This document shows positions 22,853 through 54,035 of a stretch of DNA of 64,000 bases, in pieces. The notes beneath the pieces were generated by a model that saw only the letters and a list, made by a program, of their open reading frames with translations, was not told the origin of the DNA and searched no databases. The position numbers and the translations under genes were made by a program. Numbering within the stretch: position 1 is the stretch's first letter; every line of letters starts with the position of its first letter. This DNA is from Pavona decussata (Eukaryota), in the NCBI GenBank assembly GCA_977016875.1, contig CDRNST010000180.1, positions 2,108,001-2,172,000 on the forward strand, in the 5' to 3' direction.

Positions 22853-22996
22853 ATCACATTACACAGCTCCGCGGTATGGCTGGTCAGTACAGGAGTCTGA
22901 GCCGGGTTATGCCATACTGATGAGGCTTAACAAGTCCGAAATAGCTGCGCATGGTTGTCACTACCCGGGTGATATGACTGTGCGCCATAGTGTGAC
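22853..22996 (+). mobile_element. Retrozyme/Penelope-like repeat with degenerate type I hammerhead ribozyme
   Basis: CCATA-CTGATGA-GGCTTAACAAGTCC-GAAA-TAGCTG-CG-CATGG at 22912-22954. Remnants of the same element lie at ~34996-35025, 36070-36146 and 43388-43464. Confidence 0.65.
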
Positions 22997-25900: not shown

Positions 25901-26691
25901 TTCACCGATATACTCTGGATCCAAATTACCATATTGTTTTCGCGGACGTACTGCAGTTTTGTCAAAAACACTCTGTGACGAGAAATCGAGCGTGTCGTAA
26001 ACAAGTTGTTCCAAACAAGAATGAAGTAGGATTTGTTGTAGAATTTTAGCAGCCGTTCCTTGCAATCCTTTTATACGTTAAACTTTTGGTTTAATCTATT
26101 TCTAAGTGAAATTGTTTTCAGGGTAACAAATCGTTCTATGTTATGGCTAACCCCGCCCGACAGTCACCCATGCTCGAGAGAACCGGAAATGCCACGCTAT
26201 GCGCTATTGTCTTCAGCAGAACTTGTTTTTGAGAAACACGTTTTCGAAGAGCATTTTTGTGTAGCTCTTTTATATCGCCAGAAGCACCTGACACTGATCA
26301 AACACAATGTACAATGTAATACGAAAAACTTTATTTGCTCGTTTAGAACAGTATCGTGGCTGTACCGAAGTTCCTATGCACTGATTCCATAATTCGTTGC
26401 TCGTCGTACTGTTCGATTTCAAAACGACAATCGTAGGCACAAGCTGTATAGATTTATAGTCACAAAGAACGTTCAGAAATATCTGAAATCTTGGCAATCT
26501 AGACCGTTTATGGGGTCAGTAATTGAAACATCCTGGGGTTTTCCTCGGAAATCTACAAATTTGGAAAATGATTGGTGGCTGAGACTTGTGTACATGTGGC
26601 TCAGTGTACCCATAACTACTCCAAATGCCGGCTAAAGATCTAGTGACAGCCTCTCGGTTTGTTAATCTCCTGTTAAGTGGAATGTTGAAAA

Positions 26692-26903
26692 GCTCATTTT
26701 AGACTGTGTTCTTAGAGACCTGACCTTCGGGAAGAGGTGCTGGAGTTTGCTTGGTCTTGTTTACTGCTTTTCATTTGAAAATGACTAGTTAGCATAAGAA
26801 CAACCTATTTTTGTATATGAAAAGTCTTGAGGTTCAAAGTTAACTCCAGCCTCGCCTCTAACCAAAGGCTAGGTCACTAAGCACACAACTGTAAAATGGG
26901 TAA
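26692..26903. mobile_element. MITE (palindromic)
   Basis: Imperfect long TIRs CATTTTAGACTGTGTTCTTAGAGACCTGACCTT / AAGGCTAGGTCACTAAGCACACAACTGTAAAATG. Confidence 0.65.
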
Positions 26904-28396
26904 TTTTTTTTAACTTCAACATCCCAGCTCAACGCTGCTAACTTTTTATTAGCCTCCGTTGATTGAATTGTTCGTACTTTTTATCTTATAGTCGTCAAGG
27001 CAACCATGATATTTTGTGAGCACTTGGCGCAACGTCAGCACATTCCCGTTGTTATTTTCGTAAAGTTTTCGTGTGGTTTCACAGATGCGCTACGGATCTT
27101 CTTTATCCCAAGTGAGATTATCCATGTCACATTGGGTTCTATTAGTTTGGTATAAATTGTATTTTAGTTATGTAACACGTTTTAAAACATGATCCGTTTT
27201 CGTTGCAGAATCTGACCATCAACCAACAATTGTTTAAGAGAAAACAATATTGTCTGCAGATGTGAAGGTTTAATGCTCAAATATTTTAATGCAAAATTAA
27301 GAAATAAAATATTGTACTGTAAAATCGCGTTTCTGTTGTCTAACGTAGATCCTCGAATAAGCTCCTCCCTAAGATACCTGCCTTCTCTTGAATGATCGTC
27401 CCTCCCCTTCTTATCTTTTTGAGGGAAGAGGGGCTACTACTGCCGCACCAAAGGTTGAGTATTCTCAGTTTTCACTCACGTGACTTCCACCTTGCCAGTC
27501 GTTGTTGTTCGCCATCTCTATGTCCCCTGCAATTTTGCATAATTCCATGAATTACTAAAAAAGGCATAAAGACAAGTGTAAAGGGGGTGGTTCTTTACAT
27601 TGTTTAAGATTGTGGAGGCATGTCCAATTTTCGTCTCCATCCATTATAAAAAGATTACTTTAAAACGTCAAGATAAACTACTTTGGAGTTTTGATCAAAT
27701 ACTGTTATGTTACTACACTGACATCGCGTGATCTAATTTTATGCACACTTTTGTTTACTGAAGGTGAAATTCAGCCAAGACAGTATTGTACTCTGGGAGA
27801 AAATAAAGCCTAAAACTCTAGCTAGCAGGGAAACTACTAATGATTAAATATCAACCTTGTTACTTTGGTATGTGGGTCAATTTTTTTTTCTCTGTTTTGA
27901 CTGTCAATCTTACAGTCGATGATGGCGTCGGACACAAACGTCACTGTGACGGAGAGTTAGTCGGGTGGAAACCCAAAACAATTGAAAACAGACACTGTAC
28001 AACCACGAAATGTTGCAGTGGCACGGATATGTAATTCTTATTTTAACCGACAAGACATAACATTTTTGTTCGAAGTGTCTTTTAGAAACGTAGTGTCCAT
28101 AGACGTTGCTGATAACATTTTGTAAGTGTGTCAAACTATTTAAAGAGGATTTTTAATATTCATGAATGCAATTTTACCATTTTTCGTTATATTTTTATCT
28201 CTTTGTTAAATATCTTTTATTTGATGAGAAAAATATGACAGACAATAAAACAAAGATTGCTCCATTGTGGTTTTTCGATAAATTTTTAATGAGAAATATT
28301 AGTCGACATTAATTCAACTTCAGAGAGCATAAACATAGTTTGGTGACAATCTCAACCTCAAATCAATTCAGTTTGCAATAAGTCTCATTAAAACGA

Positions 28397-28456
28397 TCCC
28401 ATTTTGTCTAGCTGTTAAGATTCCTGGTTTTCACCTAGGTGGCCAAAGGTTCGCCT
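28397..28456 (+). pseudogene. Truncated tRNA-Glu(TTC) pseudogene
   Basis: TCCCATTTTGTCTAGCTGTTAAGATTCCTGGTTTTCACCTAGGTGGCC matches the 5' two-thirds of metazoan tRNA-Glu(TTC); the 3' acceptor strand is missing. Confidence 0.75.
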
Positions 28457-29215
28457 GGCTCAAATCCAAGTACATGATGGACCTTGGCCAAGTGACGCAC
28501 GGCGAGGGGCTGCCACGCCATTGTCGTTGTGCTATAATGCCAAGAGACACGGTGACTATTGACAACCATGCCTTCGTTTCAAAGACGACTAGGAAAACAG
28601 CCAGATTGACTAGACAGAGACAACATGACAGCCTAAATGAAAAGAAATGATGACGGTCCAATAAAAACTTTCATTTTGTATTAACTGACATTTTCATAAC
28701 TGAAATGACTGAAGTCTCCCGGTGCATATCATTTGCTTGAATGATCTTGATGCTTGTGTGGGTTTGTGCTCCAATGCGATCTATATATACTTTGACTGAA
28801 CCGAAGGTAACTCAATATAAGTCCACAACAAAAGGTATTTATCTTCTTTAAACACTTTTACAGCCACACTTTGCCTTTGAAGCCGTTAATATGCTATTTC
28901 CTCTTGCTTGGCCCGATCGTTTTGTTCTTTTGTACAGTTGTTATTTGAGTGAGATTTTATCAGATGGCCACCTCAACTTGAAATGAAATCCAATTTACCA
29001 ATATACAAACGCTTTTATTTTGCTAGCGTTGTGAGCTAGAAAATATCGTCTCCTTGTTTTGCAATAGTTAAATACACTCATTTCAGTCGTTATATGATAT
29101 AGTAGAAGATATTATAACTTTTCAAAATGTTACACATTCTTGATACACCATGTTCATGTTGACTATAAACATTTAGTTCTTGTTAGATTAATCTGAAACT
29201 GTTTTACTTTAAGCA

Positions 29216-29631
29216 TTAAAGCGATAAATAGTTAGGAAAGTATTGAGGTGTAGGACGTTGAACAAAAATGTCTGGGTTTTGTTGATAAGCTGGGACGCTG
29301 TCAAGAATAGGGCGCTGGAAACCTTGATGAAAACTTGGGTTGAAATGACCGCCATTGGGTTCGTTCACTCCTCGCTTGCGAACGGACTCTTTCAGTTCTC
29401 TCTTCCACTTCATTCGTCGATTTTGAAACCATATTTTTATCTGTGTCTCTGTTAGAGCCAAGTTTGATGCTATTTCAATTCGTCGTGTTCTTGTCAAATA
29501 TTTGCTAAAATGAAACTCCTTCTCCAATTCAACTAGTTGTCGCTGCGTAAATGTGAACCTCTTCTTGTTGTTTGGAATGTTTTCTGGTTTTTTCGCCGCG
29601 GTTGTTTCCTCTTTTTCTGACCCAGTAGACA
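29216..29631 (-). CDS. Anthox6: Anthox6/HoxA copy 2, exon 2 (homeobox)
   Basis: Intact homeodomain (D39A and D59E relative to copy 1). The tandem acceptor CAGCAG gives an exon start at 29634 or 29631, both in frame. The joined CDS is 249-250 aa. Confidence 0.92.
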
Positions 29632-32132
29632 CTGCTGACGTGAAGATAATGAAAAAAGGTTAAACGATAAAACTAGCTCTCTTAACAAGCTATGCTTTAT
29701 TTAAACCATGTTTTAAGGTTAATACGATTTGATCGAGATGGCGTCCATTTTGAAATCATTGATGCATCAAACTAAACCACATAGTTAACTAATATTCGTG
29801 AAACGTTCAATCTTAATCTACTCCACCTAAAGCTCGTTCGGCTAATCACGAATACCCTTTATAGCGAATGGTGTACGCAAGGACTTTTCTGTGTTTTATT
29901 TTTCGTCTTTTCTTTTAGCTATTGTGCAAGGAAGGACAAGAAAGCATGGCCACGCCAGGGGATGATATTTTGCATCCAGTGGAGCCGCAATGTTTAAAGA
30001 TGAATGTAAACTGTTTCGGATGTGGTCGATAAGAGTAAAGATAACCTCTTCTCTGATCATTCATCAGAAGCGATAAAGATCTTTGAAAACTAAGCGATTT
30101 CTCAAAGCCATGTTAGGAGTACTTGAAGAAGAGAATATGGGACTTCCAACCGAGCTCCTTCAATTCTTATTTGATGCCACGTTTTTAAATTTAACAATGA
30201 TGGGCTACCGAATCCATTCGGGAGTCGGAAAAGTATTCTGTATATATCTCTATAATTTTTCATTTGGTTTCAGTATAGTTAGAATTATAGCTGAGTGGCT
30301 TTCTGTCGCTAGTTGTGGTAAACAACTGTACGTAGATTGAACGCTTCGAAGATTACCTTGATAGGTATGGCCTCTTTGCTTTGTTGCGTTATTCCTGTCT
30401 GTAACACAAAGAACGCTTAGAGAGCTCTACTTTTGGTGATTGAAACTTTTTTCCACTTTGTCCTTTAAAATCAGATCAGCTGATATCGAATTTATTTCTC
30501 ACACTGTTGCAAATTTTGTTGTTACATCCCTTTATGAATATTTACTCTCGCGGTTAGAGCGGATTAGCTTAAATTCTGAGTACATAAAAAAAACTTGAAT
30601 AGTCTCGTCGATCGTGTTCTATCAGTATTTCAGGACATATTTACAAAGACAGTTTTCGATTCTATCCTATTAAACTGGGTTTGAAGTTGCATTTATGAAA
30701 AACGTGACATTTAACGTACGTTAAATGGTTGCCAGCGTTTATGACTTTTGCTGCGAGCTTGACAAGGCCAAACTCATTTGTTGCTTTACAGGCTATGTAC
30801 GCTGAGAATTTTACAGGGTTATTTCAATGTTTTGAGACTTTACAAATCAATTAGAACTTTCTGAACTTCACTGGAAAAATGTATAGCATTCAGTAAAAAT
30901 TCTCTAGTCAACATCGTTCAGGTTTTGAAAGAGATCTATGTAAAAGAACAGATCATAAATGCGAATTATTGATAGCGAATGAAGACGAAGTTAAATCGAA
31001 ATTTTCTCTCTCGAATAACGCCATAGGACGTTCAAACCGAGATCGCAAAATTAATAGCGTTGTCACCTTGAGCAAACCAGGCTAATTTCAAGAGTTTAAT
31101 AAGTACATTGCATTGAAATCAATTAAAATGATTTTCAAGTGTCAGAAAAGTGTCAGCCGCACAAACGAAAATAAATTACCAATTTACAGGTTTTAATCGA
31201 AAAATTCGGTAAAGTAGTTCCTGTTTTTTGGTAAGTGTATAAATAAACAAGCTGCCAGCAGGTGTGAGGTACAAACTAAAGAGAAGATGATGAATTTTTT
31301 GCAGCGGTTATCTTTGCTGTTGAGTTTGGCTCACTTGAGCGATAAGATTATAAGTGATGTTAACTTGTGATCTTGACAATCGATTAGCGGTAACCGCATT
31401 AGAATCTGATTAACTAAATGTACTGCGGAATAAAGCTCACAGCTTATTTTGATTTATGGATTTAGCTTTCGAAATAAGACCATAAAATACCGCAATTACT
31501 GACCTTTACTCTAAGAGAATTCAACTCATTCTAGCGAGCAATTCTTGTTTTCCCTACAATGGAACTAAAAATGCCACGCTCATTTGAAAATATAACTATC
31601 TAGTCTTCTTTACTGCAAGGTGGTTTACTTCAACGCTTTTAAACTCATCGTTTTTTATGTCCGTTTCAATAGAAATACAACAGTTATTGTCGTGAAATAA
31701 CTAAATTGATGCTCAATAGTCCATGCAGTGTTGAGTCGGTATCCATTTTCAAGCTAACGAAAAGAAATGGTTTCCAGTAAACGAGCAGGTGAAACTGTAA
31801 TGAAAAATGTGCGAACTTGAAAACATAAAGATTTATCGCAGTCTTGTGCCGCTCCCGGAGAACTTGCTATCGTTGTTTGAAACTGTTCGGTAATGGTTCA
31901 ACAAAGATATCCGAAAGATTTTATCCTGCTGTCGCAAGTAACGAAGCGTTTAACGTCTACAGATACAGGAAAAAACGCACACTCGAACTAAACATACAAA
32001 CTATTGTGTAATAATACAAAAAAATGTTTTCAGGATTGTAAACTAGATTGATAGCTTGGGTAACAGGATTGTAACTGACATAAGATACAGCTATATTCAA
32101 GTAATTTCACTTCAAGTAACCTAATTTGCTAC

Positions 32133-32466
32133 CTTTTCTCTTAGTAAACATCCACCGATAGTTTGCGGTCTGCCAGGGTTTTTTCTCCGCATTCTGAACT
32201 CTCACACTTTCATTTGAACGGGGCTGCGATTGTGAAGAAGAAAACGGAGGAGATGATGGTGAAATCGGGAGCTCTCGGCTTGCCAGTGGCATCGATGAAG
32301 CACCTAACGGAGCAGAGAAAGGAAGAAAGCTTTGACGCGGCGAGGAGAGGTTGATGTTCGGATGTCGTAGAGGCATCGTCCGTCCAAAATCTAGGCCATG
32401 GCAGTGTGGTGGAACAGCTGCTGTCAAGTGTGGAGCTGGCATCCGATAGCACCAATCGTCCATCAT
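32133..32466 (-). CDS. Anthox6: Anthox6/HoxA copy 2, exon 1
   Basis: MMDDW start, NYRWM hexapeptide-like motif, phase-1 donor AAAG|GTAGCA; in-frame 21-nt deletion relative to the other copies. Confidence 0.88.
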
Positions 32467-32534
32467 TTTGTTAGAGTCTCGCCTTACCGGCGTCCAACTG
32501 CTGTCGCTAACTGATCAAGCGCAAGACTTACGAA

Positions 32535-32583
32535 CAGTGGAAACGAGCGGCGATGAGGGTGACTTATAAACCCGGGGCGGGTT
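32535..32583 (-). promoter_or_regulatory. Core promoter of Anthox6 copy 2
   Basis: CCCGCCCC-GGG-TTTATAAG on the minus strand, same position as in copy 1. Confidence 0.5.
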
Positions 32584-35336
32584 CTGTGGCTGGTAGTCAA
32601 TGTATCGATGAATAGGAGCGACTCGAATCAACGTACAAGTTATGTTATTACACGAAAGCACGGTGCACTCCCATGGAAGAGCGTAGATGAGGTAGATCAG
32701 TATTCCGCTGCGTTTGGCGAAGAGCGGACGAAAATCTCCTGGGGTTTCAATTAGAGACGTCGTTTTCTACTTGTCTAGGAAGTGTCTGAGTGAATCTGTG
32801 AGAGTCACGCTGGGGTTTCCAAAGGTACAATGCGACACACGCTCCAATCAAAAATAATTAAAATTAAATCGTATTAAGTTAATCGGCGAACGCTGAACAA
32901 TAGCTCGGACTCAATCGTGTCTTTTTCTTTCAGATGGAAGGACAAAACGGCCCACATATTTGTAAAACTTGCCTCGGGCAAATGGAATCCATTATTGCGA
33001 CCTCATGCCTTATTTCAAGACAATCATCATTTGTCTTATTCTGTGGCGAGGAGCTGTGTTTCTGTTTGAAGAATAACTATAACAACAATTCAAGTTTCGA
33101 CTTTTGTAACCATAATTCTGTGTTGTCTTCTGACCCATGCAGGAAGTAATGATTATCTTTCCGTTATCTAAACTGCGAGTGAAGACGGAAGACCGCCTAG
33201 GAACAACGAGCCATTTTTCCAAAAAAAGGAGAAAACAAAGTCGGATATCACTTGTTTGGTATAAGGATACAGCGGGAATTCTTTTATAATCATCAGTCAT
33301 CAGTTCAAAATATTGCAAAAATTTATAAATCTCCGTAATTCACATTGTATTTCACTTCAAAATAAAGAACGTTCACCTTCGTGGTTCGAACTTTCGGTGA
33401 TATACCACTACTGAAGCTAAATATATTCCGGAAGGTTTTTTTTTTTCCAAATCCGGCGTTTTTATCATCCGTAGTTTGTCATCTGTCTTAAGTCGCGATG
33501 GCAAAGGTTCTTGACATTCCATCTAGCTTTCTGGTACAAATTGTGTACAAACTGACTTACTCAAGCAGAAAGTGCGGTTTTAATCGCATTGTGAGCGTCA
33601 TTTTTGCGGCTGTTTAATTTGTGCAGATTACACGGTCTCCGTCAGATGGCGAAACTTCAGTGAACCATAAATAAAACATTTCAATAGATTTCACATTTTA
33701 ATAAGAAGTTGTTTCGTGCTGAGAGGTACAATAAGGCCCCTCTTCGTATTGACGGCATACAAGCCTTAAAAGTTTCAATCACGTTCTCAACAAAATGGCT
33801 TGCCGCTATAATCCGCCAATGCTTTTGTACCTGGTTTATTTTGATAACGCAAATACACCGTTGTGATTCCGTATAAAGTGTTCTAAAAATAGAGATCACG
33901 AGCTGCCGTTTGTAGGCGTGTGTGGGCTGGACGTTTTGGCATCTAAAAAATCATCTGGAAGACACCAAAAGAATCACCTCAAAATCGCTAGATATGGTGT
34001 AGAATTGTTCAATTCCCAAAATTCTCTAGTGTTTTTATTCGTTCTATTAAATAGCTTAATATTAAGATTTCCCTGTTCATATAAATTGACGTAAGCAAGT
34101 AGTATGAATCAAGTGAAAACGAAGGTTAAAAATATATGCCTGAGCAACAAAACAAGAAAAAATTGTTGATTGAGCTTGTCGCTGCATCGAGCTGGTTTTA
34201 CCGCGAAACAATATTAAACTCTTGTACCACCACTTTTGTTGTTTGAAGAAATAGATTATAATAAGAACTAGGCCTTCGAATTCACATTATTAGTCAATGT
34301 TTCAACCTTCGTTCCCTTGGAATAGAACTAAGTCAAGATTCGAACACAAAAAACGTCTTCATCCATTCCGGGCGTATACCTACAAGCCAATTTCTAAAAT
34401 TTTTACAATTTAGGAGCACAGGTCAAACTTTACCACAAAAAAGGTTATTGTGTGCCTCAGTCGCCATTGTTTTTTCTCATAAGGTGCTATTGTAGTTATG
34501 TTTGAAGACAGGTGTAAACTTTCTTTACTACAGCACATTTGGTTACTTCAATTTTTATTTCATTTATTATAAGTTTCTTGTTGATGTTAACACAAACTTG
34601 GGTTCAGTCTCTTTCAGGTAATATCCTTCAAAATTGACTTCCTCGAGAAAGAAGAATTAATTTAAATGAAAAAAAACCTAAGGGTGTAATTTATCCTTTC
34701 GACTGAGGCGACTACTACTCAATATATGCCTTTCCGATCGTTTGATAAATTTTATCACAAATTGCTATAAAACTCAAGTGTTGGTAAATTTTGGAAACTA
34801 CCGGCGAGGAACAGTTAAGAGAAAGCTTCTACGGTCCACTGAAACGAATCAAAAGTACATTATTTTAACTAATGTAAATTGCACCCACTACACCTTCACA
34901 CAATTTCTTCGTTCTTAAGTAAAATCTACAGCACGCATGCTCAGCAAAGTGTAACGTCACAAAACCTCAACACTGGAACCCAGTTCACTCGAACAGTCAC
35001 ATTACACAGCTCTGCGGAATGGCCACGGCGAAGAGATATAATTAAATTGAACTCCGTCATATAATAATTTCATTGGCTTTTCTTCGATCAACTCTATCCG
35101 ACTCGTTTGAAGGCAGCTTTGGGTTGTGTGTTCCCTGAGTTCGTATAACCGCTATAAACTGAAGGCTGATTAATTTTGTATTAATTATACAAAACAGGTT
35201 AAACTTCCCAATACGCTCCACTTTTTTTCTCTCTTTATGTACAAGATGTATTTAGGAAACCTCAGGAAATGTGAACAAACGATGAAAATTAATTGAAAAG
35301 AAGTTGCAAAATAGTGTCCAAAAGTCCAATATTAAA

Positions 35337-35513
35337 AATAGGCAATTTCCGAGTTGTTGTGAACCTCATTATAAAAGCGAGGCTAAGTGTAAAGCTTTTC
35401 ATATGAAAATTAGTTTTGTTTGCACGAGTTTGCAGACTAATTTTCATAATAACAACTTTGCACTTAGTCTCGCTTTCATAGTGAGGCCTAAAACAACTCG
35501 AAAATGGCCTATT
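35337..35513. mobile_element. Palindromic MITE
   Basis: AATAGGCAATTTCCGAGTTGTT ... AACAACTCGAAAATGGCCTATT with inverted symmetry along nearly the whole length. Confidence 0.75.
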
Positions 35514-35708
35514 CTACAATGAGCCACGCCATTCCATGCCGATTATTACTTGGGATTATTTCGGGGTCAGCGTGAAAAAAACAATCAAACAAAAAAGAGA
35601 CTATTTCGGTGTCGGTTCATTTCAGGGTCAATCTGGGGACCATTTCGCGCTTGGGGATCATTTCAGGGGCCGTAAAACCCTAACAAGTCCGGGACAGCTG
35701 CCCACCAG

Positions 35709-35947
35709 GCCCCAGTTGTTCAAAGGCCAGATAACTTTATCCTGTGGATAAGTCACTATCCGACTTTTTGAATCTGTGCAAAGATTTCAATATTTCCTCT
35801 TGTACAAGCTTTTATGCACACTCTAACCACATTTAAGTTTGGGAGTGTACGAAAACCTTGGACAACGTTTAACGTGAAGTATATTTTAGACCCTGAACAG
35901 TGCCTTATCCAGCGGATAAAGTTATCCGGCCTTTGAACAACTGGGGC
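35709..35947. mobile_element. MITE with 3-bp CAG target duplication (PIF/Harbinger-like)
   Basis: TIRs GCCCCAGTTGTTCAAAGGCCAGATAACTTTATCC / GGATAAAGTTATCCGGCCTTTGAACAACTGGGGC, flanked by CAG on both sides. Confidence 0.85.
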
Positions 35948-35957
35948 CAGGCCACCA

Positions 35958-36070
35958 AAATCTCGTTCCCAGAGGCTGCGTTCCTTTTGGTCATCACCAA
36001 GGAAGCAAGACATCCGAGCCTGCACATGGCCGTTGGCCTAAAACGCTTGAGGGCCCTGGGGACGAGATTG
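35958..36070. mobile_element. Short MITE
   Basis: TIRs AATCTCGTTCCCAGAG / CCCTGGGGACGAGATT; only the right end survives in copy 3 (~43372-43388). Confidence 0.65.
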
Positions 36071-36312
36071 TGGCTCCTACTGCCCAGTGATATGGCTGTG
36101 CGCATGCGTAAGGGACCGTCCATTACGCAGAGCTGTATAGTGTGACAAATGCATTTCAAATAGTGTATTTAAAGAACCCTAGAATGAGAGTGTGAACGAT
36201 CCACCTCGAGTCGATACGTAAATCATTCAGATTGTAGTTGGTTTGCTCCCTTGGCAAAATCCGCGTTTGGATGGACTAAAAGATGGCGACCTACCAGAGG
36301 ATACTCCGCGTA

Positions 36313-36570
36313 TTGATATTTTCAAACGGAAACTTAAGACTCTCCTTTTTAAGAGAGCATATCTCGAGTAGTTTTTTAGAATAACGTTTATACGATTTTT
36401 AATTTTAACAGAATTAGTTAGCATAATATTTATGATCTAATTTTTTTATGTATGATAGTTTACTTTTTAATACTACATATATTGTCTAATTGATACTATT
36501 TGTAAAGCGCATTTCAAAACTTTAGTTGAATTTGCGCTATAGAAATTATTACTATTATTATTATTATTAT
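36313..36570 (+). mobile_element. 3' end of an L2/CR1-like LINE with (TTA)n tail
   Basis: Encodes IDIFKRKLKTLLFKRAYLE*, followed by a 3' UTR and (TTA)n. The empty site is visible in copy 3 (~43950) and copy 1 (~23175). Possible GTA target duplication. Confidence 0.8.
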
Positions 36571-38268
36571 GTAAGTTTTGGTAGGGGTGTGTGCCATCCG
36601 ATTCTCCAAACTCTGAGCCTATTTTAGAACAAAACATGTCATTTTTCCACGCTCGTCTCAGATCTGGGCCAGGTTGCAAAAACCATTTTAAGATGAGTGG
36701 GAGTTGTCTGCAGTCGTTCCTTGTCTTCCAAGGGATGTTCCCGCGTTCTTTTTGTGTTCTCTATCCTCAGTAAATCAGGTTTAGCCCATTGATCCAATAT
36801 AGCGCCCGGCAAAATCCTCCCGAACAAAGAAAGCAGAACCGGGCTAGCTGGTTTCTAAAACTCATGTTCATTTTTTATCACGTCCAATAAATCTTTTGTT
36901 TTGTCTTTTTCGTCATTTTCTCCCTTTTTCGTTTGAAGATAAAAAAAGACAAATATGTGTATGGGCTCTACAAAAATTTTATTAAGGTCCTAAACAAAAT
37001 AGCCCGTTCGATTGTCATGTACATGTAAGCACGGAACTGGACAAAATTCCCAGATTTCGTATTGAATTTCCTTTTAGCCCGAGCGAAAACTTTCTGCAGA
37101 TGTGAGGGTTTAATGCTCAAATATTTTAATGCAAAATTAAAGAATAAAATGTTGTACTGTAAAATCGTAACGTGTTTCTGTTGTCTAACATAAATCCTCG
37201 AACAAGCTCCTTCCTAAGATACATGCCCCTCTTGAGTGATCGTCCCCTCCCCTTCTTATCTTTTTGAGGGAAGAGGGGTTACTACTGTGACACCAAAGGT
37301 TGAGTATGAGTATTCTCGGTTTTCACTCACGTGACTTCCACATTGACAATCGTTGTTGTCCGCCATCTCTACGTTTCCTGCAATTTTGCACAATTGCATA
37401 AATTAAAAAAAAGCATAAAGTCAAGTGTAAAGGGGGTGGTTCTTTGCATTGTTTGAGATTGTGGAGGCATGTCCAATCTTCCTCTCCTACTATCATAAAC
37501 AGATTACTTTCAAACGCCAAGATAAACTACTTTAGAGTTTTTATCAAATACTGTTATGTTACTACACACTGACATTGCCTGATCTAATTCCTGCACATTT
37601 TTGTTTACTGAAGATGGAATTCAGTCAAGACAGTTTTGTACTCTGGGAGAAAATAAAGCTTGATACTCTAGCTAGCAGGGAATTGAAACTACTTATGAGT
37701 AAATAGCATCCTTGTTACTTTGGTATGTGGGTCAAGTTGTTTCTTTCTCTGTTTTCGTGATGACGGTCAATCTTACAGTCGATGATCGCGTCGGACAAAG
37801 ACATCACTGTGACGGGGAGTTGTTCGGGTGGAAACCAAAACAATTGAAAACAGACACTGTACAACCACCTTTATGTTGCAGTGGCACGGATTTTTAATTC
37901 TTATTTTAACCGACAAGACACAACATTTTTGTTCGAAGTGTCTTTTGGAAATGTAGTGTCCATAGACGTTGCTGATAACATTTTGTAAGTATGTCAAACT
38001 ACTTAAAGAGGATTTTTAATATTCATGAATGCAATTTTACCATTTTTCGTTATATTTTTATCTCTTTGTTTATTAAATATCTTTTATTTGGTGAGAAAAA
38101 TATGACAGACAATAAAACAAAGATTGCTCCATTGTGGTTTTTCGATAAATTTTTAATGAGAAATATAAGTCGATATTAATTCAACTTGGATGAGTATCAA
38201 CATTGTTTGGTGACAATCTCTGCTTAACCTCAAATCAATTCAGTTTGCAATAATTCTCATTAAAACGA

Positions 38269-38328
38269 TCCCATGTTGTACAGCAGTTGAGATTCCTGGT
38301 TTTCACCTAGGTGGCCAAAGGTTCGCCT
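38269..38328 (+). pseudogene. Truncated tRNA-Glu(TTC) pseudogene (duplicate of 28397)
   Basis: TCCCATGTTGTACAGCAGTTGAGATTCCTGGTTTTCACCTAGGTGGCC. Confidence 0.7.
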
Positions 38329-39089
38329 GGCTCAAATCCAAGTACATGATGGACCTTGGCCAAGTGACGCATGGCGAGGGGCTGCCACGCCATTGTCGTT
38401 GTGCTATGAATGCCAAGCGACACGGTGACTAGTGACAACTGTGCCTTCGTTTCAAAGAGGACTGGGAAAACAGTCAGATTGACTAGACAGAGACAACATG
38501 ACAGCCTAAATGAAAAGAAATGATGACGACCTAATAAAAACTTTCATTTTGCATTAACTGACATTTTCATAACTGAAATGACTAAAGTCTCCCGGTGCAT
38601 ATCATTTGCTTGAATGATCTTGATGCTTGTGTGCGTTCGTGCTTCAATGCGATCAATGTATACTTTGAACCGAAGGTAACTCAATATAAGCCCACAAAAA
38701 AAGGTATTTATCTTCTTTAAACACTTTTACAGCCACACTTTGCCTTTGAAGCCGTTAATATGCTATTTCCTCTTGCTTGGCCCGATCGTTTTGTTCTTTT
38801 GTACAGTTGTTTTTTGGGTGAGATTTTTATCAGATGGCCACATCAACTTGAAATGAAATCCAATTAACCAATATACAGACGTTTTTATCTTGCTAGCATT
38901 GTGAGCTAGAAAATTGCGTCTCCTTCAGTTTAGCATTAGTAACTAACACACTCATTTCAGTCGTAATATGATATAGTAGAAGATATTATAACTTTTCAAA
39001 ATGTTACACATTCTTGATACACCATGTTCATGTTGACTATACACATGTAGTTCTTGTTACATTGATCTGAAACTGTTTCACTTTAAGCA

Positions 39090-39505
39090 TTAAAGCGATA
39101 AATAGTTAGGAAAGTATTGAGGTGTAGGACGTTGAACAAAAATGTCTAGGTTTTGTTGATAAGTTGGGGCGCTGTGAAGAATAGGGCGGTGGAAACCTTG
39201 ATGAAAACTTGGGTTAAAATGACCGCCATTGGATTCGTTCAGTCCTTGCTTGCGATTGGACTCTTTGAGATCTCTCTTCCACTTCATCCGTCGATTTTGA
39301 AACCATATCTTAATCTGTGTTTCTGTAAGATCCAAGTTTGATGCTATTTCAATTCGTCGTGTTTTTGTCAAATATTTGCTAAAATGAAACTCCTTCTCCA
39401 ATTCAACTAGTTGTCGCTGGGTAAATGTGAACCTCTTCTTGTTGTTTAGAATGTTTTCTGGTTTTTTCGCCGCGGTTGTTTCCTCTTTTTCTGATCCAGT
39501 AGACA
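39090..39505 (-). CDS. Anthox6: Anthox6/HoxA copy 3, exon 2 (homeobox)
   Basis: Intact homeodomain with R28K. CAGCAG acceptor (exon start 39508 or 39505). The joined CDS is 256-257 aa. Confidence 0.92.
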
Positions 39506-42042
39506 CTGCTGACGTGAAGATAATGAAAAACGGTTAAAAGACAAAACTAGCTCTTTTGAAAAGCTATGCATTATTTAAACCATATTTTAAGGTTAATACG
39601 ATTTGATCGAGATGGCGTCCATTTTGAAATCATTGATGCATCAAACTAAACCACATAGTTAACTAATATTTGTGAAACGTTCAATTATAATTTACTTCAC
39701 CTAAAGCTCGTTCGGCTAATCACGAATACCCTTTATATCGAATGGTGTAAGCAACGATTTTAATGTGTTTTATTTTTCGTCTTTTCTTTTAACTACTGTG
39801 CAAGGAAAGACAAGAAATTATAGCCACGCCAGGGGATGATATTTTGCATTCAGTAAGCCGCAATGTTTAAAGATGAATGTAAACTGTTTCGGATGTGGTC
39901 GATAAGAGTAAAGATAACCTCTTCTCTGACCATTCATCACAAGCGATAAAGATCTTTGAAAACTAAGCGATTTCTCAAAGCCATGTTGAATGTACTTGAA
40001 GAAGAGAATATGGGAAGTCCAACCGAGCTCTTTCTTATTTGATGCCACGTTTAATTTAACAATGATGGGCTACCGAATCCATTCTGGAGTCGGAAAAGTA
40101 TTCTGTATATATCTCTACAATTTTTCATTTGATCTTAGTATTGGAATTATAGTTGAGTCGCTTTCTGTAGCTAGTTGTGGTCAACAACTGTGCGTAGATT
40201 GAACGCTTCGAAGATTACCTTGGCTTCTTTGTTTTTCTGTGTTATTCCTGTCTGTGACACAAAGAACGCTTAGGGAGCTCTACTTTTGATGATTGAAACT
40301 TTTTTCCACTTTGTCCTTTTAAAATCAGATCAACTCATACCGAATTTATTTACACTGTTGCAAATTTTTTTGTTACATCCCTCTATGAATATTTACTCTC
40401 GTGGTTAGAGCGGATTAGCTTAAATTCTGAGTAGTAAAAGAACTTGTATAGTCTCGTCGATCGTGTTCTATCAGCATTTCAAGATTTTAGAAAGACAGTT
40501 TTCGATTCTATCATATTAAACTGGGTTTGAAGTTGCATTCATGAAAAACTTTTTTGTCCTAACGTACGTTAAATACTTGCCAGCGTTTATCACTTTTGCT
40601 CCCGGAGCAAAGCTCGGGCCGAGCTTGACAAGGCCGAACTCATTTGTTGCTTTATAACTTAGGTACGTTGTAAATTTTAAGACTTTATAATCAATTAGAA
40701 CCTTCTGAACTTCCCTGGAAAATAGTATAGCATTCAGTAAAATTCCCTAGTCATTCAAGAAGCAAATTTTCTTTCATCATCGTTCAGGTTTTGAAAGAGA
40801 TCTGTGTAAAAGAACAGACCACCAATGCGAATTGTTGATGGCAAATAAAGACGAAGTTAAATCGAAATTTACTCTCTTGAATAACGCCATAGCGTCCGGG
40901 ACGTTCAAACCGAGATCGCAAAATTAACAGCGTCGTCACCTTGAGCAAACCAGGCTAATTTCACGAGTTTAATGAGTACATTGCATTGAAATCAATGAAA
41001 ATGATTTTCACAAGTGTCAGAAAAATGTCAGCCGCACAAACGAAAATAAATTACCAATTTACAGATTTTAATCGAAAAATTCGGTAAAGTAGTTCCTGTT
41101 CTTCGGCAAGTGAATATTTAAATAAACAAGCTTACTAGCAGAGGTGATGAACAAACTAAAGAGAAGATGATGAATTTTTTTGCGGCGGTTATCTTTGGTG
41201 TTGAGTTTGGCTCACTTGAGCGATAAGATTATAAGTGATGTTAACTTGTGATCTTGACAATCGATTAGCGGTAACCACATTAGAATCTGATTAACAAAAG
41301 GTACTGTGGAATAAAGCTCACAGTTTATTTTGATTTATGGATTTAGCTTTCGAAATAAGATCATAAAATACCGCACTTACTGACCTTCACGCTAAGAGAA
41401 TTCAATTCATTCTAGCGAGCAACTCTTGTTTTCCCACAACGCCGGGAAACTAAAAATGCCACGCTTATTTGAAAATATAACTATCTAGTTTTCTTTAATA
41501 GAAGGTGGTTTACTTCAACGCTTTTTAACTCATCGTGTTCATGTCCGTTTCAATAGAAATACAACAGTTATTGCCGGGAAATAACTGACTTGATGCTCAA
41601 TAGTCCATGCAGTGTTGAGGCGGTATCCATTTTCAAGCTGACTAAAAGAAATGGTTAGTCTCTAGTAAACGAGCAGGTGAAACTGTTAAAAATGTCCGAA
41701 CTTGAAAACATAAAGATTTATCGCAGTCTTTTGCCGCTTCCGAAGAACTGGCTATCGTTGTTTGAAACTATTCGTTTGTTTTAAAATATTCGGTAATGGT
41801 TCAACAAAGATATCCTAAAGATTTTATCCTGCTGTCGCAAGTAACGAAGCGTTTAACGTCTAAGAACTACAGGAAAAATCGCACACTCGAACTAATAAAA
41901 AAACATAGAAACTATTCTGTAATAATATAAAAAATGTTATCAGGATTGTAAACTAGATTGATAGCTTGGGTAATAGGATTGTACCTGACATTAGATATAG
42001 TTATATTCAAGTAATTTCAGTTCAGTCAACCGACTTTAATAC

Positions 42043-42397
42043 CTTTTCTTTTAGTGAACATCCACCGATAGTTTGCGGTCTGCCAGCGTTTTTTCTCCGC
42101 ATTCTGAGCTCTCACACTTTCATTTGAACGGGGCTGCGATTGTGAAGAAGAAAACGGAGGAGATGATGGTGAAATTGGGAGCTCTCGGCTTGCCACTGGT
42201 ATCGGTGAAGCACCTAACGGAGCAGAGAAAGGAAGAAAGCTTTGACGCGGCGAGGAGAGATTCATGTTCGGATGTCGAGCGCTGTTTGGAGGATGTCGTA
42301 GAGGCATCGTCCGTCCAAAATCTAGGCCATGGTAGTGTGGTGGAACGGCTGCTGTCAGGTGTGGACTTGGCATCCTATAGCACCAATCGTCCATCAT
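42043..42397 (-). CDS. Anthox6: Anthox6/HoxA copy 3, exon 1
   Basis: MMDDW ATG at 42397, NYRWM motif, phase-1 donor AAAG|GTATTA. Confidence 0.88.
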
Positions 42398-42465
42398 TTT
42401 GTTAGAGTCTAACCGTACTGGCTTCCAACTGCTGTTGCTAACTGACCAAGCGCAAAACTGACGAA

Positions 42466-42514
42466 CAGTGGAAACGAACGGCGATGAGGGTGACCTATAA
42501 ACCCGGGGCGGGTT
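42466..42514 (-). promoter_or_regulatory. Core promoter of Anthox6 copy 3
   Basis: CCCGCCCC-GGG-TTTATAGG on the minus strand, homologous to copies 1 and 2. Confidence 0.5.
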
Positions 42515-43465
42515 CTGTGGCTGGTAGTCAATGTATCGATGAATAGGAGCGACTCGAATCAACGTAGACGTTATGTTATTGTACGAAAGCACGGTGCACT
42601 CTGATGGTAAAGCGAAGATCAGTATTCCTTTGCGCTTGGCGAAGAGAGGAAGAAAATCTCCTAGGGTTTCAATTAGAGACGTCGTTTTCTATTTGTCGAG
42701 GAAGTGTCTGAGTGAATCTGTGAGGGTCACGCTGGGGTTTCCAAAGATACAATGCGACACACGCTCCAATCAAAAATAATTAAAATTAAATCGTATTAAC
42801 TCAACCAGCGAACACTGAACAATAGCTCGGACTCAATCGTGTCTCTTTTCCTCCAGATGGAAGGACAAAACGTTCCCACATATTTTTAATACTTGCCTCG
42901 GGCAAATGGAATCCATTATTGAGACCTCATGTCTTATTTCAAGAGAGTCATCATTTGTCTTCTGTGGCGAAGAGCTGTGTTTCTGTTCGAAGAATAACTA
43001 TAACAACAATTCAAGTTTCGACTTTTGTAACCTTAATTCTGTGTTGTCTTGTGACCCGTACAAGTAGTGATGAGTATCTTTTCGTTATCTAAGCTGCGAG
43101 TGAAGACAGAAGACCGCCTAGAAACAACGAGCCATTTTTTCCAAGAAAAGGAGAAAACAATGTCGGATATCACTTGTTTGGTATAAGGCTACAGCGGGAA
43201 TTCTTTTATAATCATCAGCCACCAGTTCAATATAAACAAACAAACAAACAAAAAAGAGACTATTTCGGTGTCGGTTCATTTCAGGGTCAATTTGGGGACC
43301 ATATCGCGGCTGGGGATCATTTCGGGGGCCGTACTAACCTTACAAGTCTGTTGGGCTAAAACGTGCGCGGGCCCTGGGGACGAGATTGTGGCTGCCACTG
43401 CCTGGTGATATGGCTGTGCGCATGCGTAAGTGACTGTTGATAACGCGGAGCCGTATAGTGTGACC

Positions 43466-43760
43466 AATTAACAAATCGACGGCAGTTTTCTATGGTCTAT
43501 ACTCTTATAGGCGAGTGGTTTCACTGCCAAGTTTTGGACATTTTATGGCGTCATTTTATGGTCTATAAGAGTATAGACCATAGAAAACTGCCGTCGATTT
43601 GTTTTTTACAATAACATGAAAAAAAATACGAGCGGAATTGGCTATTTTTTCGTTGAGAAAGCGCACGCGTTACATCTGACGTCAATTTCTTTGTCTGTAC
43701 TCTTATAGACAATAGCTACAAGCCAATCAGCGCGCGGGAATTTGGACAGTTATTGTAAAA
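43466..43760. mobile_element. Non-autonomous double-inverted-repeat element specific to copy 3
   Basis: A 40-bp perfect inverted repeat (ACAAATCGACGGCAGTTTTCTATGGTCTATACTCTTATAG) is followed by a second pair, TTTTACAATAAC / GTTATTGTAAAA. The empty site is at ~36146 in copy 2. Confidence 0.8.
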
Positions 43761-44378
43761 TGCATCTTAAATAGTTTATTTAAAGAACCCTAGAATGAGA
43801 GTGTGAACGATCCACCTCGATACGTAAATCATTCAGATTGTATTAAATCCAAGATTGGTTTGCTCCTAAATGAAAAGAAAATTATAATTTCCTTGGCAAA
43901 ATCCGCGCTTGGATGGACTAAAAGATGGCGACCTATCAGAGGATACTCCGCGTACGTTTTGGTAGGGGTGTGTGCCATCCGATTCTCCAAACTCTGAGCC
44001 TATTTTAGAACAAAACTTGTCATTTTTCCACGCTCGTTTCAGATCTGGGCCAGGTTGCACAAAGCATTTTAAGATGAGTGGGAGTTGTCTGCAGTCGTTC
44101 CTTGTCTTACAAAGGATGTTCCCGTGTTCTTTTTGTGTTCTCTATCGTCAGTAAATCAGGTTTTGCCCATTGATCCAATATAGCGTCCGGCAAAATCCCC
44201 CCGAGCACAGAGAGCAGTTGCAGAAACTCCCACTTATCTAAAGATGATTTATACAACTCGGCCTAGCTAGTATCTAAGATTCATGTTCATTTTTTATCAC
44301 GTCCAGTAAATCTTTTGTTTTGTCTCTTTCGTCGCTTTCTCCCTTTTTCGTTTGAAGATAAAGAAGACAAATATGTGT

Positions 44379-44500
44379 TATATACCATAATTAATAATTA
44401 TTCTAGGTGTATACAGGGCCCCTCAGGATAACAGCCCCGTAGCTGATTGGGCCACCCTGTCTAAATAAATTTCACTTACTTACTTACTTACTTACTTACT
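44379..44500 (+). mobile_element. Short 3' end of a non-LTR retroelement with (CTTA)n tail
   Basis: Insertion absent from copy 2 (~36960); AATAAA followed by a (CTTA)n tail. Confidence 0.6.
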
Positions 44501-45087
44501 ATAGGCTCCTTGATGAAATAGCTCGTTTGATTGACATGTACATGTAAGCACGGAACTGGACAAAATTCCCTTTTAGCCCGAGCGAAAACTTTCTGCACGT
44601 CATTGCAAACTACTATTTAAAATAGTTTATTCGCGAGTGGAGACGGATATGTTGAGATTTCAGTCCCTGAAACCGGCTAAAAATTACAGTTGGCCCGACA
44701 ATTCAGCACCTTGGCTGAAATCCTGTATGTAATCGCCCCCTTAGAAATGGATTGGATGACACATGATTTGCCTCCTCAGTGAAAGCGTCTAAGAATTGAA
44801 ATATTAGAATCGAAACGGTTGTCACTGAGAACTAAACCATGATGGAGAAACCCGCTGTCTGTTCAGTGGAAACAAAACACCGAAAACGTTCGAAATATAT
44901 CCACTTACTGGACTCTTATACAAGCGTTTAAAGCCAAAAATTAAAAAATTAAGGCGTTAAAATTGAAGAGAAGTTGGTGAAAAAACGGTAAGGAAAAGAA
45001 AAAAGATGATTGAAGTGAACAAATAAGGTTTGAAATAAATGCAAAAATCAGTGTTTTTCTCCTCACTGCGACCACGCTTTGAAAAAG

Positions 45088-45204
45088 AGCCTGCGCAATG
45101 GGAGGGGCCCGTCGCGCGTCATTCGCGCTCCACGTTCGCCTGAAAAACGCCCCCCCCCCCCCCCCCAAAAAAAAAAAAAAAAAAAAAACCTGTTCTGCAG
45201 GCTA
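45088..45204. mobile_element. Short MITE-like element with C/A homopolymer runs
   Basis: Ends AGCCTGC ... GCAGGCT; GC-rich interior. Confidence 0.5.
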
Positions 45205-45890
45205 AAATTTCGCTTGCCATCTTTCAAGTATTTTCAATCTTCCAGGATTGACAGCGTTGGGCAATCTCCTTTGCGGATATTCTCTCCATTTCTTCTTGAG
45301 TAATGCCGTGAGTCTTCCCTGGATTGTAGTTCCAGTTTTTGTTGGTACCTTTCATGGATTGAAGATAACTGGCCTTCGATCTCTTCTTATTGGCCTCTGG
45401 CAATAAAACATTCCTCAAGGCTTTCTGCAGTTCTATCTTTTTGTCAGAAAGATGTTTAACGTTCTCTGTGATCTTTAGGTGGACAATGTCCTTGGCAGTT
45501 AGTTTAGCATTTCTACGTTCCTCGATCACACATTTCACTCTGTTTATTGAAGCATTCCAACTCTGAGCTTTATACCCACATCAGGTTAAGTTAAACAATG
45601 CTGATAACTTGAGGGCTATGTATTGACTTGGGCTTACAAAATTATGATTGGCTCACTGAGAAGCCACTAAGAGTGACTTAAAATTATAATAATTGCACCG
45701 ATAATTGCATTTCATTTCCAAATTGAAATTAATTTAAAAGTGTAAAGCACAAACGAACGTTCTAACTGCCACTATTACTATTTTGTTATTATTACTACCA
45801 TCACTATATTATTAAGTTATAATTACATATTAACAACAATATGGATTACAGGATTACATTTATCGTGTACTTGGTACACCACACCTGACA

Positions 45891-46010
45891 CGGGGGAGTC
45901 TAAAACGCAGGTCACAGTTCACAGGTACAGGTCACAGGTAGCAGGTTAGGGTTGTACCTGTAACGTGTTACCTGTTACCTGTACCTGTGACCTGATGGTT
46001 AGACCCGCCG
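45891..46010. mobile_element. MITE with 9-bp target duplication (Mutator-like)
   Basis: Imperfect TIRs with ACAGGT subrepeats; flanked by CACCTGACA / TACCTGACA. Confidence 0.75.
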
Positions 46011-47143
46011 TACCTGACATCATGCGAGGCAATAGTCCACTTACCACTTATCCAGTCCATTCTGAATCAAACGTACCCAAAAGGTCTTGGACAAATTCCA
46101 AGAAAAGTACACTCTCTTCATTAAACTGCATCACCTCTGTAATTTTCTACAGTAGAAATAAAGAAATTAATAAGAGATCAAAACCTAAAAAGAGGTTAAA
46201 ATCTCTATTGGTTACATTCACCAGTCCAGATTCAGGGTGAAACAGATCCTCTCCAAACGTTAACTGTGACTTTTGATGTTGTAATGTGACGTATTCCCGG
46301 CCACGTGTTTACACCAAGTCAGCATAAATGTCAAATGCCAAGTCTAATGGCAGATATCCTTTCCATCGTCCGGTTGCAGTATATTGTAAGGCTGTCTAAA
46401 ACTGCCACAAGACCCTTCAATAAAATATTACTATTACCGGAAAGTTTTGCTCTGTTCTGACTGTTGACGACTGCAAAGACTTGTACAAAACCTCCCTCTG
46501 CTTTGCTCTCTCAATAAAACCGATATCTAAGACAACTGGAGAGAGACCATGCGATAAACCAGCAATAACATCAAATTCTTTTTCTTTCCCATCACGAGCC
46601 GACTCCGCCATTTTGCTTTTCACCGCAGGCTAGGTCCGCAGGCTACCCATGCATCATCCAGTCTCCTCTCTTCTAATACGAACGCCTGCAACATTTTTTG
46701 CTGTGAGCCATTGCAGTTTTGGCACGTTAATCAGGCGATCTTCGATCGTTTGCCTTTAGAAAATGGAAATTGATAATCATGGCCATAAAAGAAAGCAATA
46801 TCTGGTAAAAGACTGTTACTGTGAAGAGTATGAGATGCCAGGCAAACCTGTGGGCAGCTATATAAACTGTTTACTGAGCTCTGGATGTCCACCCGCCAAA
46901 CAGAAACGCGCAGAAACGAGATGACAGTGGTTCTTCCACAACGCCAGTTTCACCAGTCCACGATAAATTCATTGGAGATCAACGCTTGCTAACCTCTTAA
47001 ACCGCTGAGCCTCAGTAAAAGTGGAAAGACAAGAAGTATGGATATGTGCCAGATGAGAAAGATGTCTGTTTGGGAGCGAGCTGTTGCCAAGATTTTTTGA
47101 CAGCCACTAAGAAGGGTAAGTGAAAAACCAACTTTAATGAAAT

Positions 47144-47237
47144 TATTGTAGAGAGGGATCCCTCTCTACAATATCCAGATCGATACTATCAATTTGTGGA
47201 ACTCCGGAGTTCCACAAATTGATAGTATCAATCTGGA
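47144..47237. repeat. Two abutting spacer-less palindromes (30 bp perfect; 64 bp with one mismatch)
   Basis: TATTGTAGAGAGGGA|TCCCTCTCTACAATA, immediately followed by TCCAGATCGATACTATCAATTTGTGGAACTCC|GGAGTTCCACAAATTGATAGTATCAATCTGGA. Confidence 0.95.
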
Positions 47238-48167
47238 CACCCTAGCTTTTTTTACCTCATTAACTGACAAAGCTTGCATGAGAGACCTGCTCAGCTGCGA
47301 TTGTTTTGTTGGAGAAGCTGCAGAGTCGGTTCAGGAATTCTTAGGATGAACAGAAATACAGAAAGCCCTACTAAAAATACGAGTCATTGTTGACTCTTTC
47401 ATGTTACTCTCATAACCATTTTTAAAATTACATTGCTAACTGCATCCAGGCAGTACCTGGAATGGAATTGGCTAATTCTCAACACAACTGTACACTGCAG
47501 GTGCCAGTGAACAACATTTAAAAAATTTTAAGGTCTCAACAACAAAAACAACAAAAATTTATATGTACCAGTTTGTGTATCTCCTGTTAGATAGGATGTC
47601 CAATGCCTGAAACTGAAGGTCATGCGAGGTGGGTGCAGCTTTGGTCGCTTGCCTTGACCTGATTGATTAAATATCAATTAATAATAATTAATATTATTGA
47701 TAATTTTTAAAATGGTCTTCTGTTGACTTTGAAAATGTTATTAACAACAATCATAAAACTTTCTTTGTAGACTTCTTCATCAATAATAAATGTCATTAGT
47801 CTTCATCAAATGAATTTTTTTTTTTTTTAATTTATCTTATGGTCTTCAAGACGACCACAAGATTCTGTGAAGATTTACTGCCACATTGGCATATTCCTGT
47901 GGTTCTTTCCATGAGCATGAATACAATTTTTACTTTTTTTAGTCATATTTAATTAGTTATATACTTTTAATTTTATGAGAAAAATATGGTAAACAGTTTA
48001 CATAAATTGTTTAATAGGTTTGCAATAAATTTTGATATTAATGAGTTACTAGTGGCTATTTAAAAATCAATTTGAGTGATTATTAACATCGTTTGGTGAC
48101 TTCTCTGTCCTAACTCAAATCATTTCAGTTTGTAGTAATTCTCATTCAGAAGAGCACTCCTATTAGT

Positions 48168-48239
48168 ATATATATAGTACAGCGATTAGGATTCCTGGTT
48201 TTCACCCAGGTGGCCCGGGCTTGACTCCCAGTATGGGAA
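48168..48239 (+). pseudogene. tRNA-Glu(TTC) pseudogene, near full length
   Basis: AGCGATTAGGATTCCTGGTTTTCACCCAGGTGGCCCGGGCTTGACTCCCAGTATGGGAA. The anticodon arm is intact, but the T-loop (TTCGA>CTTGA) and the 5' acceptor strand are damaged. Confidence 0.8.
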
Positions 48240-48574
48240 ATAAACTAAATTTCTTTTTCACCCTACAGTTTGGCTTCATTTTTAGTGAAACCAAGCATGC
48301 AAACAAACAAGCAAACAAACTAAAACAATTCAGTTTGTAACAGTAGTTGACCTGCACCTTCAAAAGCTCTATTTTCATTGGACCTGCAGCTGAATTGCTT
48401 TTTAGGGTTGGGAGCATTGTTCTGTTGTTTGTTCTTTTGTCCTATTGACCAACCGTGTGAGACATTGGAAACAGTGAAGGTTGCCCCTGTAACAATGCTA
48501 TGGCTTCTAGTCAGTTCACCATGGTTACCAGGGTAGTAGGCGTTGTAGTAATAATAATAATAACAATAATAATT

Positions 48575-53575: not shown

Positions 53576-54035
53576 TTTTTCAAGCAAAAAATGACTTCTT
53601 TTGGTTAGATGAACAAAGGAAACAGTGACACGCAGTCAGACTCGCAAGTTTTTGTCGAAATGGGGTCAGAGATTTAATATTACCCGTGGATCACATATTC
53701 GTGTATTAAATTTCCTAGGGGAGTACTCCTTCCTGGGATCCCAGGGAGAATTTAATAGTCCATCTGAGTAAAGACGCAGTTATACACAATAGAAAAAACA
53801 TTCATTTAATAGTTATAATCTGGTTGGTTTTTTTATGCTATATTCATTTGTTTATACATAGTTCAGTCTCTGATGTAGGAAACTATAATATTATGTTCTT
53901 AACTTTGGTTATTTTTACCTCTTGCCGTTTTTGTTTTTGTATAATAAGCCAGCACTTAACGCTTTCAGCTCCAGAATAGAATCTAGACTCATTTGATGTT
54001 CATCTTACTTTCAAGCCTGTACATGTGGATCAAAT

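Follow-up and report, generated by a model that had tools for sequence, protein, structure and literature searches.

The 64,000-nt stretch of DNA analysed here (hereafter the window) carries three direct units of one Hox-bearing segment, delineated by self-BLAST as unit A from 14831, unit B at 27253-37092 and unit C at 37093-44597, with one minus-strand homeobox in each. Unit B (9,840 bp, plus strand) comprises Hox gene B with its 3' flank and 4.6 kb of DNA upstream of it, together with later insertions at 35708-35947 and 36310-36570, and unit C (7,505 bp, plus strand) has the content of B without a counterpart of B 33312-35575. Gene A belongs to an older repeat unit (14831-28460, plus strand), the tail of which is the A-B spacer containing the left edge of unit B. 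Gene B consists of exon 1 at 32133-32466 (minus strand, from the ATG to the donor, with a 21-bp in-frame deletion relative to A and C) and exon 2 at 29216-29634 (minus strand, from the acceptor ...cgtcag/CA through the homeodomain to the stop). The likewise two-exon Hox gene C has exon 1 at 42043-42397 and the homeodomain-encoding exon 2 at 39090-39508, both on the minus strand, and gene A has exon 1 at 18540-18894 and exon 2 at about 15567-15991. The neighbour of copy C is an Evx homeobox (55340-55516, minus strand). Exon 1 starts with the conserved ATGATGGAC and ends at an AAAAG/GTA donor; the DNA upstream of it is UTR, because indels there are non-triplet. The acceptor of exon 2 lies just before ...VSTGSEKEE, as placed by annotated coral proteins. 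Exons were searched and analysed separately and the counts for dN/dS summed per exon, which gave pairwise values of 0.2-0.4 among the copies; judged from sequence, all copies appear to have stayed under purifying selection.

The homeodomains of A, B and C are of the Antp class (Pfam PF00046, E = 1e-21 to 5e-22), and in a structure search Antp, HoxB1 and Scr were tied as the best solved relatives, a result that does not discriminate the paralogy group. Upstream of the homeodomain, a tryptophan hexapeptide, YRWM, is conserved in exon 1 of A, B and C, in that of gene X of a related coral (see below) and in annotated coral proteins. Among the homeodomain signatures, YLTRTRR and TETQIK resemble those of PG1. 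The closest named relatives are the 'ceh-13-like' proteins of the stony corals Montipora, Oculina, Porites and Pocillopora, and the organism is therefore a scleractinian coral; 'ceh-13-like' (labial-type) is the NCBI label of the Montipora and Pocillopora orthologues. Along the contig the order is Anthox6a-like(+), Anthox1a-like, Anthox7/8-like, Evx, C, B and A, with the Anthox6a-like gene on the opposite strand and the triplet placed beyond Evx from Anthox7/8 in shared orientation. The order in the Nematostella cluster is anthox7-8a-8b-Evx-anthox6 (PMC1779807), and the Hox inventory of Montipora comprises three 6a genes, 1a, 8, two 6 genes and Evx (bioRxiv 10.1101/2024.09.29.615694). On cluster order and homeodomain signatures, the triplet is probably of the Anthox6/HoxA type, anterior class. 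An earlier reading of the DNA made from the letters only (the sequence-only reading) had spoken of a Hox paralogue, and that description fits all three copies, with their intact ORFs, GT/AG splice sites and low dN/dS, the Anthox6/HoxA type being assigned by cluster order.

The joint of the younger tandem duplication lies at 37093-37098, where unit B ends and unit C starts with one and the same TCTGCA; the sequence at 37081-37108 is GAGCGAAAACTT-TCTGCA-GATGTGAGGG. Its left parental edge (27253-27258) is the TCTGCA that opens unit B, with unrelated spacer DNA before it, and its right parental edge (44592-44597) is the TCTGCA that closes unit C, followed by the unrelated flank CGTCATTGC. In comparisons anchored on the hexamer, the bases left of the joint were identical to those left of the right-edge copy (20/20), and those right of the joint agreed with the bases right of the left-edge copy at 19/20 and 39/40 positions, the sole mismatch being A/G; cross comparisons stayed at the random level (4/10 and 9/20; 2/10 and 4/20). 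The matches to 44581-44597 on one side and from 27253 onward on the other, as given in the sequence-only reading, hold, with the single difference that this reading had itself marked. Its contention that the parental sites have only TCTGCA in common also withstood alignment: a Smith-Waterman comparison over 1.5 kb on either side of the edges found no homology beyond the hexamer (score 17 against 16.9 +- 2.6 for shuffles), so that the homology extending well beyond TCTGCA, which that reading had named as grounds for rejecting it, is absent. A simulation with 400,000 random breakpoint pairs in the window gave a probability of 0.0022 for microhomology of 6 bp or longer. The joint has no filler bases, and the position of the breakpoint is resolved down to the 6-bp ambiguity. 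A scan for inverted and direct repeats revealed no hairpin of note at either edge, only short AT-rich repeats, and no N stretches were met in the examined sequence.

In self-BLAST, akin to the self dot-plot that the earlier reading had proposed as a check, the joint forms the boundary of the collinear B/C match: a 6.2-kb alignment of 27253-33312 with 37093-43234 (89.8% with gaps) starts at the joint, and the unit tails are collinear as well (B 35575-37092 with C 43234-44597). Units B and C differ by about 7% substitutions and, beyond these, by many indels, a 2.26-kb deletion and two copy-specific insertions. The 2.26-kb block was lost by C, because B 33312-35575 is partly conserved in A. Copy A is about 84-85% identical to B and C in matches that start at 14831, 28461 and 38333, and this boundary of the older duplication is borne out by BLAST. 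No tRNA was found in the window or at 27900-28700 with ARAGORN and Rfam. In the A-B spacer, about 1.1 kb (27058-28160) including the left edge has no counterpart at 47908-47916 in the tail of the second older unit; this stretch is single-copy in the genome, and either it was inserted after the older duplication or the other copy lost it.

Related corals, from ENA samples ERZ25073751/ERZ25073805, ERZ26692669, ERZ25071802 and ERZ25067868, provided a copy-number series for the locus. The relative sp1, represented by ENA assembly contig L001 (98.3-98.7% identical to the window in the B/C body), has an un-joined, intact right-edge site in addition to the joint. In sp2 (sample ERZ26692669, about 7% diverged from the window in substitutions), a 297-kb contig shows, in order, the right flank (45004-44598), the unit end, B-type upstream DNA including the 33.3-35.7 kb block, gene X, the left side, the spacer and A. 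Gene content is thus A plus X as a single B/C-type gene; the joint is absent on this contig, and a 20-kb contig of sp2 shows the identical arrangement. The right-edge site of sp2, GAGCGAAAACTT-TCTGCA-CGTCATTGC, is the intact, un-joined parental state. In sp3 and sp4 (about 70% identical to the window), a single gene is located between the downstream flank of A and Evx-proximal intergenic DNA, with no other homeobox in the 19 kb upstream of it. With one gene in sp3 and sp4, two in sp2 and three here, the locus went from one to two to three copies. The sequence-only reading had called this duplication the younger one and had suggested a search for sister species lacking the junction; sp2 is such a species, and A is more distant from B and C than these are from one another. 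Since the event is old and has become fixed, two-copy haplotypes within the species, another item on that list, are unlikely.

Several smaller differences were recorded across the same comparisons. Exon 1 of gene C (42043-42397 against L001 5993-6550) differs from its sp1 counterpart by nine nonsynonymous and three synonymous changes (dN/dS about 0.9), and in sp1 it has an additional 12-bp in-frame deletion; for exon 2 of C, the window and sp1 encode the same protein. In its N-terminal arm, C appears to be relaxed or to evolve fast. Upstream of C, window 43348-48700 and L001 1-5230 are 84-97% identical, below the level of the B/C body, and the 3' flank of B (25690-30290) is also lower in comparison with sp1 (94.8%); deep haplotypes or locally high turnover may account for the lower identity of these flanks. 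The tail of C in the window lacks, at 44568-44571, a 19-20-bp segment (CAGATTTCGT.TTGAATTT) that the joint copy has kept, as have the sp1 and sp2 right edges, and this gap is a small deletion private to the window's genome. A motif of about 107 bp is tandemly repeated between C and Evx (54035-54468) and occurs also at about 5600-5700, and related copies are found near the single Hox gene of sp3 and sp4.

The possibility that a false haplotig duplication or mis-join created the B-C boundary carries next to no probability, has nothing positive in its favour and is effectively refuted. Units B and C are separated by the substitutions, indels, 2.26-kb deletion and copy-specific insertions described above, and the joint recurs in independent material. 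Contig L001 carries it at about 11475, together with the right edge, and the flanks of both are identical to those of the window over 25 nt; contig L009, derived from a second ENA sample, covers both B and C in full with the joint at 11319, but is not independent of L001, because the two are 100% identical where they overlap. Logan contigs were compared with window 36571-39600, the bridging evidence here consisting of assembled contigs. Record 10 of X12, a run labelled as another organism, bridges the joint (36920-37171, 8 differences), and record 18 of the coral metagenome X5 (36889-37126, 5 differences) is a borderline bridge with 28 unique bases right of the hexamer; in X7 the right-edge flank appears as a loose end behind 37098, and among the matches listed no bridging contig came from X1 or X7. 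The joint is real and not an artefact, because of the roughly 7% divergence between B and C and its presence in an independent assembly and in contigs. The sequence-only reading had come to the same conclusion from the joint itself; the conclusion stands, but the divergence and the independent assemblies and contigs are stronger arguments than the joint. Non-allelic homologous recombination (NAHR) or transposon-mediated unequal crossing-over, acting through the older A/B repeat or through dispersed elements and leaving TCTGCA as a chance remnant, would have had an older tandem repeat already present at the locus and a SINE-like element 520 bp from the joint to work with, but it is very unlikely. 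The edges have no homology beyond 6 bp. Apart from its paralogues, the DNA to the left and right of the joint occurs only once in the 602-Mb genome, and the left-edge DNA is likewise not dispersed; no transposon lies at the joint or at its edges. In coordinates of the older repeat, the right edge falls at about 23.95 kb and the left edge at 27.25 kb; this offset of about 3.3 kb puts the breakpoints out of register and argues against homologous recombination as the route, since in-register NAHR would recreate the older junction and not a new one. The SINE-like repeat (36310-36570, about 260 bp, of which other contigs hold at least 37 copies at 85-93%) is the only dispersed repeat nearby and is later than the duplication: it is present in B and in sp1 and absent from C and sp2, and hence its insertion into B falls between the duplication and the split from sp1. 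At 35708-35947 lies a 240-bp element with terminal inverted repeats of 50 nt; found in the window's genome only and absent at the site in sp1 and sp2, it looks like a recent MITE-like insertion.

Two further alternatives concern the history of the event. In the first, which leaves the joint as it is, the duplication might predate the split from sp2, which would then have lost a copy by B/C recombination, its two-copy state being a reversion. The near-star distances (B-X 6.9%, C-X 7.3%, B-C 7.4%), by which X is almost equidistant from B and C, would fit such a course, as would the residues NLA, KRE and NEP that B and X share in exon 2 and that are missing in C. A three-taxon analysis with A as outgroup and sp1 left out was itself close to a star, with 23 shared-derived sites for BC, 18 for CX and 12 for BX, and 189, 214 and 185 unique substitutions for B, C and X, respectively. 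With B and C of sp1 added, however, the maximum likelihood tree was ((B,C),X) with support of 99/99, and the AU test rejected X+B (p = 0.014) and X+C (p = 0.004); moreover, X shows no B-like/C-like mosaic along its length, and the reversion demands one extra event. The exon-2 pattern can be explained by conversion instead: A and C have NLD/KRD/NES, B and X have NLA/KRE/NEP, and A of sp2, with NLD/KRD/NEP, keeps NEP, while exon-2 dS between A and B (0.13) is below that between A orthologues (0.19). Gene conversion of exon 2 among paralogues, from A to C in the window's lineage, is likely on these patterns; trees may be biased by conversion, but the structure of the sp2 locus points the same way as the tree. 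A duplication before the sp2 split is accordingly improbable, and the preferred order, split first and duplication after it, gives an internal branch of 0.008 and branches of 0.035-0.04 from the duplication node to the tips, the shortness of the former meaning that the duplication closely followed the split from sp2. The second alternative starts from the left edge of sp1, where 23 bp including TCTGCA are missing between TG/TG (L009 about 1560). Were this the ancestral state, the joint would have begun with about 17 bp of filler and the edge in the window would have gained the 23 bp by conversion. That sp1 lacks exactly the 23 bp containing the hexamer, and that no outgroup retains the spot, speaks for this course; it is nevertheless exceedingly unlikely, as conversion needs two-sided homology and nothing on the left is related; one unit position distinguishes the 23 bp from their copy at the joint, a difference that old divergence would produce; the TG/TG flanks are typical of small deletions; and two extra events are required.

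The left edge is also altered in sp2, where about 205 bp are missing (27080-27284; L003 about 9600-9760) and an insertion at about 27325 carries an 84-bp copy of window 26682-26766 (the mafft gap being 64 bp). The DNA at 27253-27284 existed at the time of the duplication, because unit C has its counterpart, and the deletions in sp1 and sp2 would most simply be secondary. Because the left-edge site is deleted in both relatives, the full three-site picture is visible in the window's assembly alone. A stretch of about 200 bp thereby hosts the duplication breakpoint, independent deletions in sp1 and sp2 and the nearby insertion in sp2, whereas the window and sp1 differ by only three indels of 10 bp or longer over 11.5 kb. 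The chance that both deletions cover the left-edge site is about 0.3% by a rough joint estimate made post hoc. The scarcity of indels elsewhere and the two independent deletions on the breakpoint suggest, again post hoc, an indel-prone spot; that the spot (about 27.08-27.29 kb) is a recurrent fragile site in the coral Hox-Evx cluster is a tentative and rather unlikely proposition.

Taken as a whole, the locus displays two direct adjacent copies of one segment, a short motif (in the range of 2-20 bp) at both parental edges and once at the joint, parental edges without extended homology or a repeat element, and an un-duplicated state in the single unit of sp2, the right edge of which is intact and the left edge obscured by the 205-bp deletion. 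The microhomology-mediated tandem duplication proposed in the sequence-only reading is the best reading of edges that share only TCTGCA, have single-copy flanks and lie 3.3 kb out of register. Very probably, a single head-to-tail, microhomology-joined duplication of an Anthox6/HoxA-type Hox segment took place in the ancestor of this coral, and the three-site signature is, as far as DNA sequence can tell, that of a microhomology-primed, non-homologous event. Soon after sp2 had split off, a segment of about 9.5-9.8 kb, containing a complete two-exon Hox gene with about 4.6 kb of DNA upstream of it and about 2 kb of 3' flank, would have been duplicated once, turning the pair A+X into A+B+C. The end of the segment (...AAAACTT-TCTGCA) would have been joined to its own start (TCTGCA-GATGTGA...) through the 6-bp microhomology, leaving one hexamer at the joint and no filler. 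The geometry of the three sites, the absent homology, the single-copy flanks, the recurrence of the joint in independent data and the joint-less relative are observed; the enzymology of the event is inferred. One candidate route is a replication template switch (FoSTeS/MMBIR, restart-bypass type), in which a nascent 3' end finishing in TCTGCA at the right edge would anneal to the complementary hexamer about 9.8 kb behind the fork and re-copy the segment; the other candidate is microhomology-mediated end joining of sister chromatids broken at two different sites. Afterwards B would have gained the SINE-like insert and the 21-bp in-frame deletion, and C would have lost 2.26 kb of proximal upstream DNA. 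As a result of this arrangement, only 4.6 kb of native DNA remains upstream of B before the 3' flank of C begins, and C retains the original distal upstream context towards Evx.

Microhomology-mediated tandem duplications, by FoSTeS/MMBIR or by alternative end joining with polymerase theta, are known from copy-number variants in humans, flies and cancers. The coral duplication resembles them in its direct head-to-tail orientation, its unit of about 10 kb, its 6-bp microhomology and the absence of other homology and of a transposon. In contrast to those variants, it took place in a cnidarian and is old (about 7% divergence) and fixed; its signature can still be read, and a sister lineage keeps the arrangement from before the duplication. 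Lineage-specific Hox duplicates have been described in Nematostella (anthox7/8a/8b; PMC1779807) and in Montipora capitata, which has three Anthox6a and two Anthox6 paralogues (bioRxiv 10.1101/2024.09.29.615694). These share with the present locus the tandem arrangement of anterior-class Hox paralogues in a compact Hox-Evx cluster, the orientation of the neighbours and the two exons; here, however, three Anthox6-type copies arose in two nested steps, both of which can be placed on the species series, and the joint of the second step is resolved to the base, whereas breakpoints are not described in either of those reports (PMC1779807; bioRxiv 10.1101/2024.09.29.615694). Montipora shows expression of its Anthox6 paralogues at settlement. 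The copying of a whole gene with its flanks to an adjacent position, with both copies kept under purifying selection, is in line with the model that derives Hox clusters from tandem duplication (Ryan et al. 2007, PMC1779807), but the coral case is recent and small in scale and says nothing direct about ancient ProtoHox events. In the literature searched, no published report of the triplication or of any coral Hox duplication joint was found. The mechanism as such is ordinary and its class well known, and lineage-specific Hox duplications in anthozoans are already known.

Tandem duplication is the presumed way in which Hox clusters grew. To our knowledge, the joints of Hox duplications are almost never visible, being ancient. 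At this coral locus one can recover not only the joint and its two parental edges but also the arrangement before the duplication, kept in a sister lineage, and an outgroup with a single copy, so that it is known exactly what the copied block contained; with the upstream content of B and C known, regulatory divergence of young coral Hox paralogues becomes directly testable. The importance of the finding would rise if the copies proved to be differently expressed or if the left edge were a recurrent fragile site. In the latter case, the locus would represent a natural hotspot for replication-fork failure and would offer, in closely related corals, a 1-2-3 copy series of one Hox gene for testing regulatory sub- or neo-functionalisation following a birth that is dated and base-resolved.
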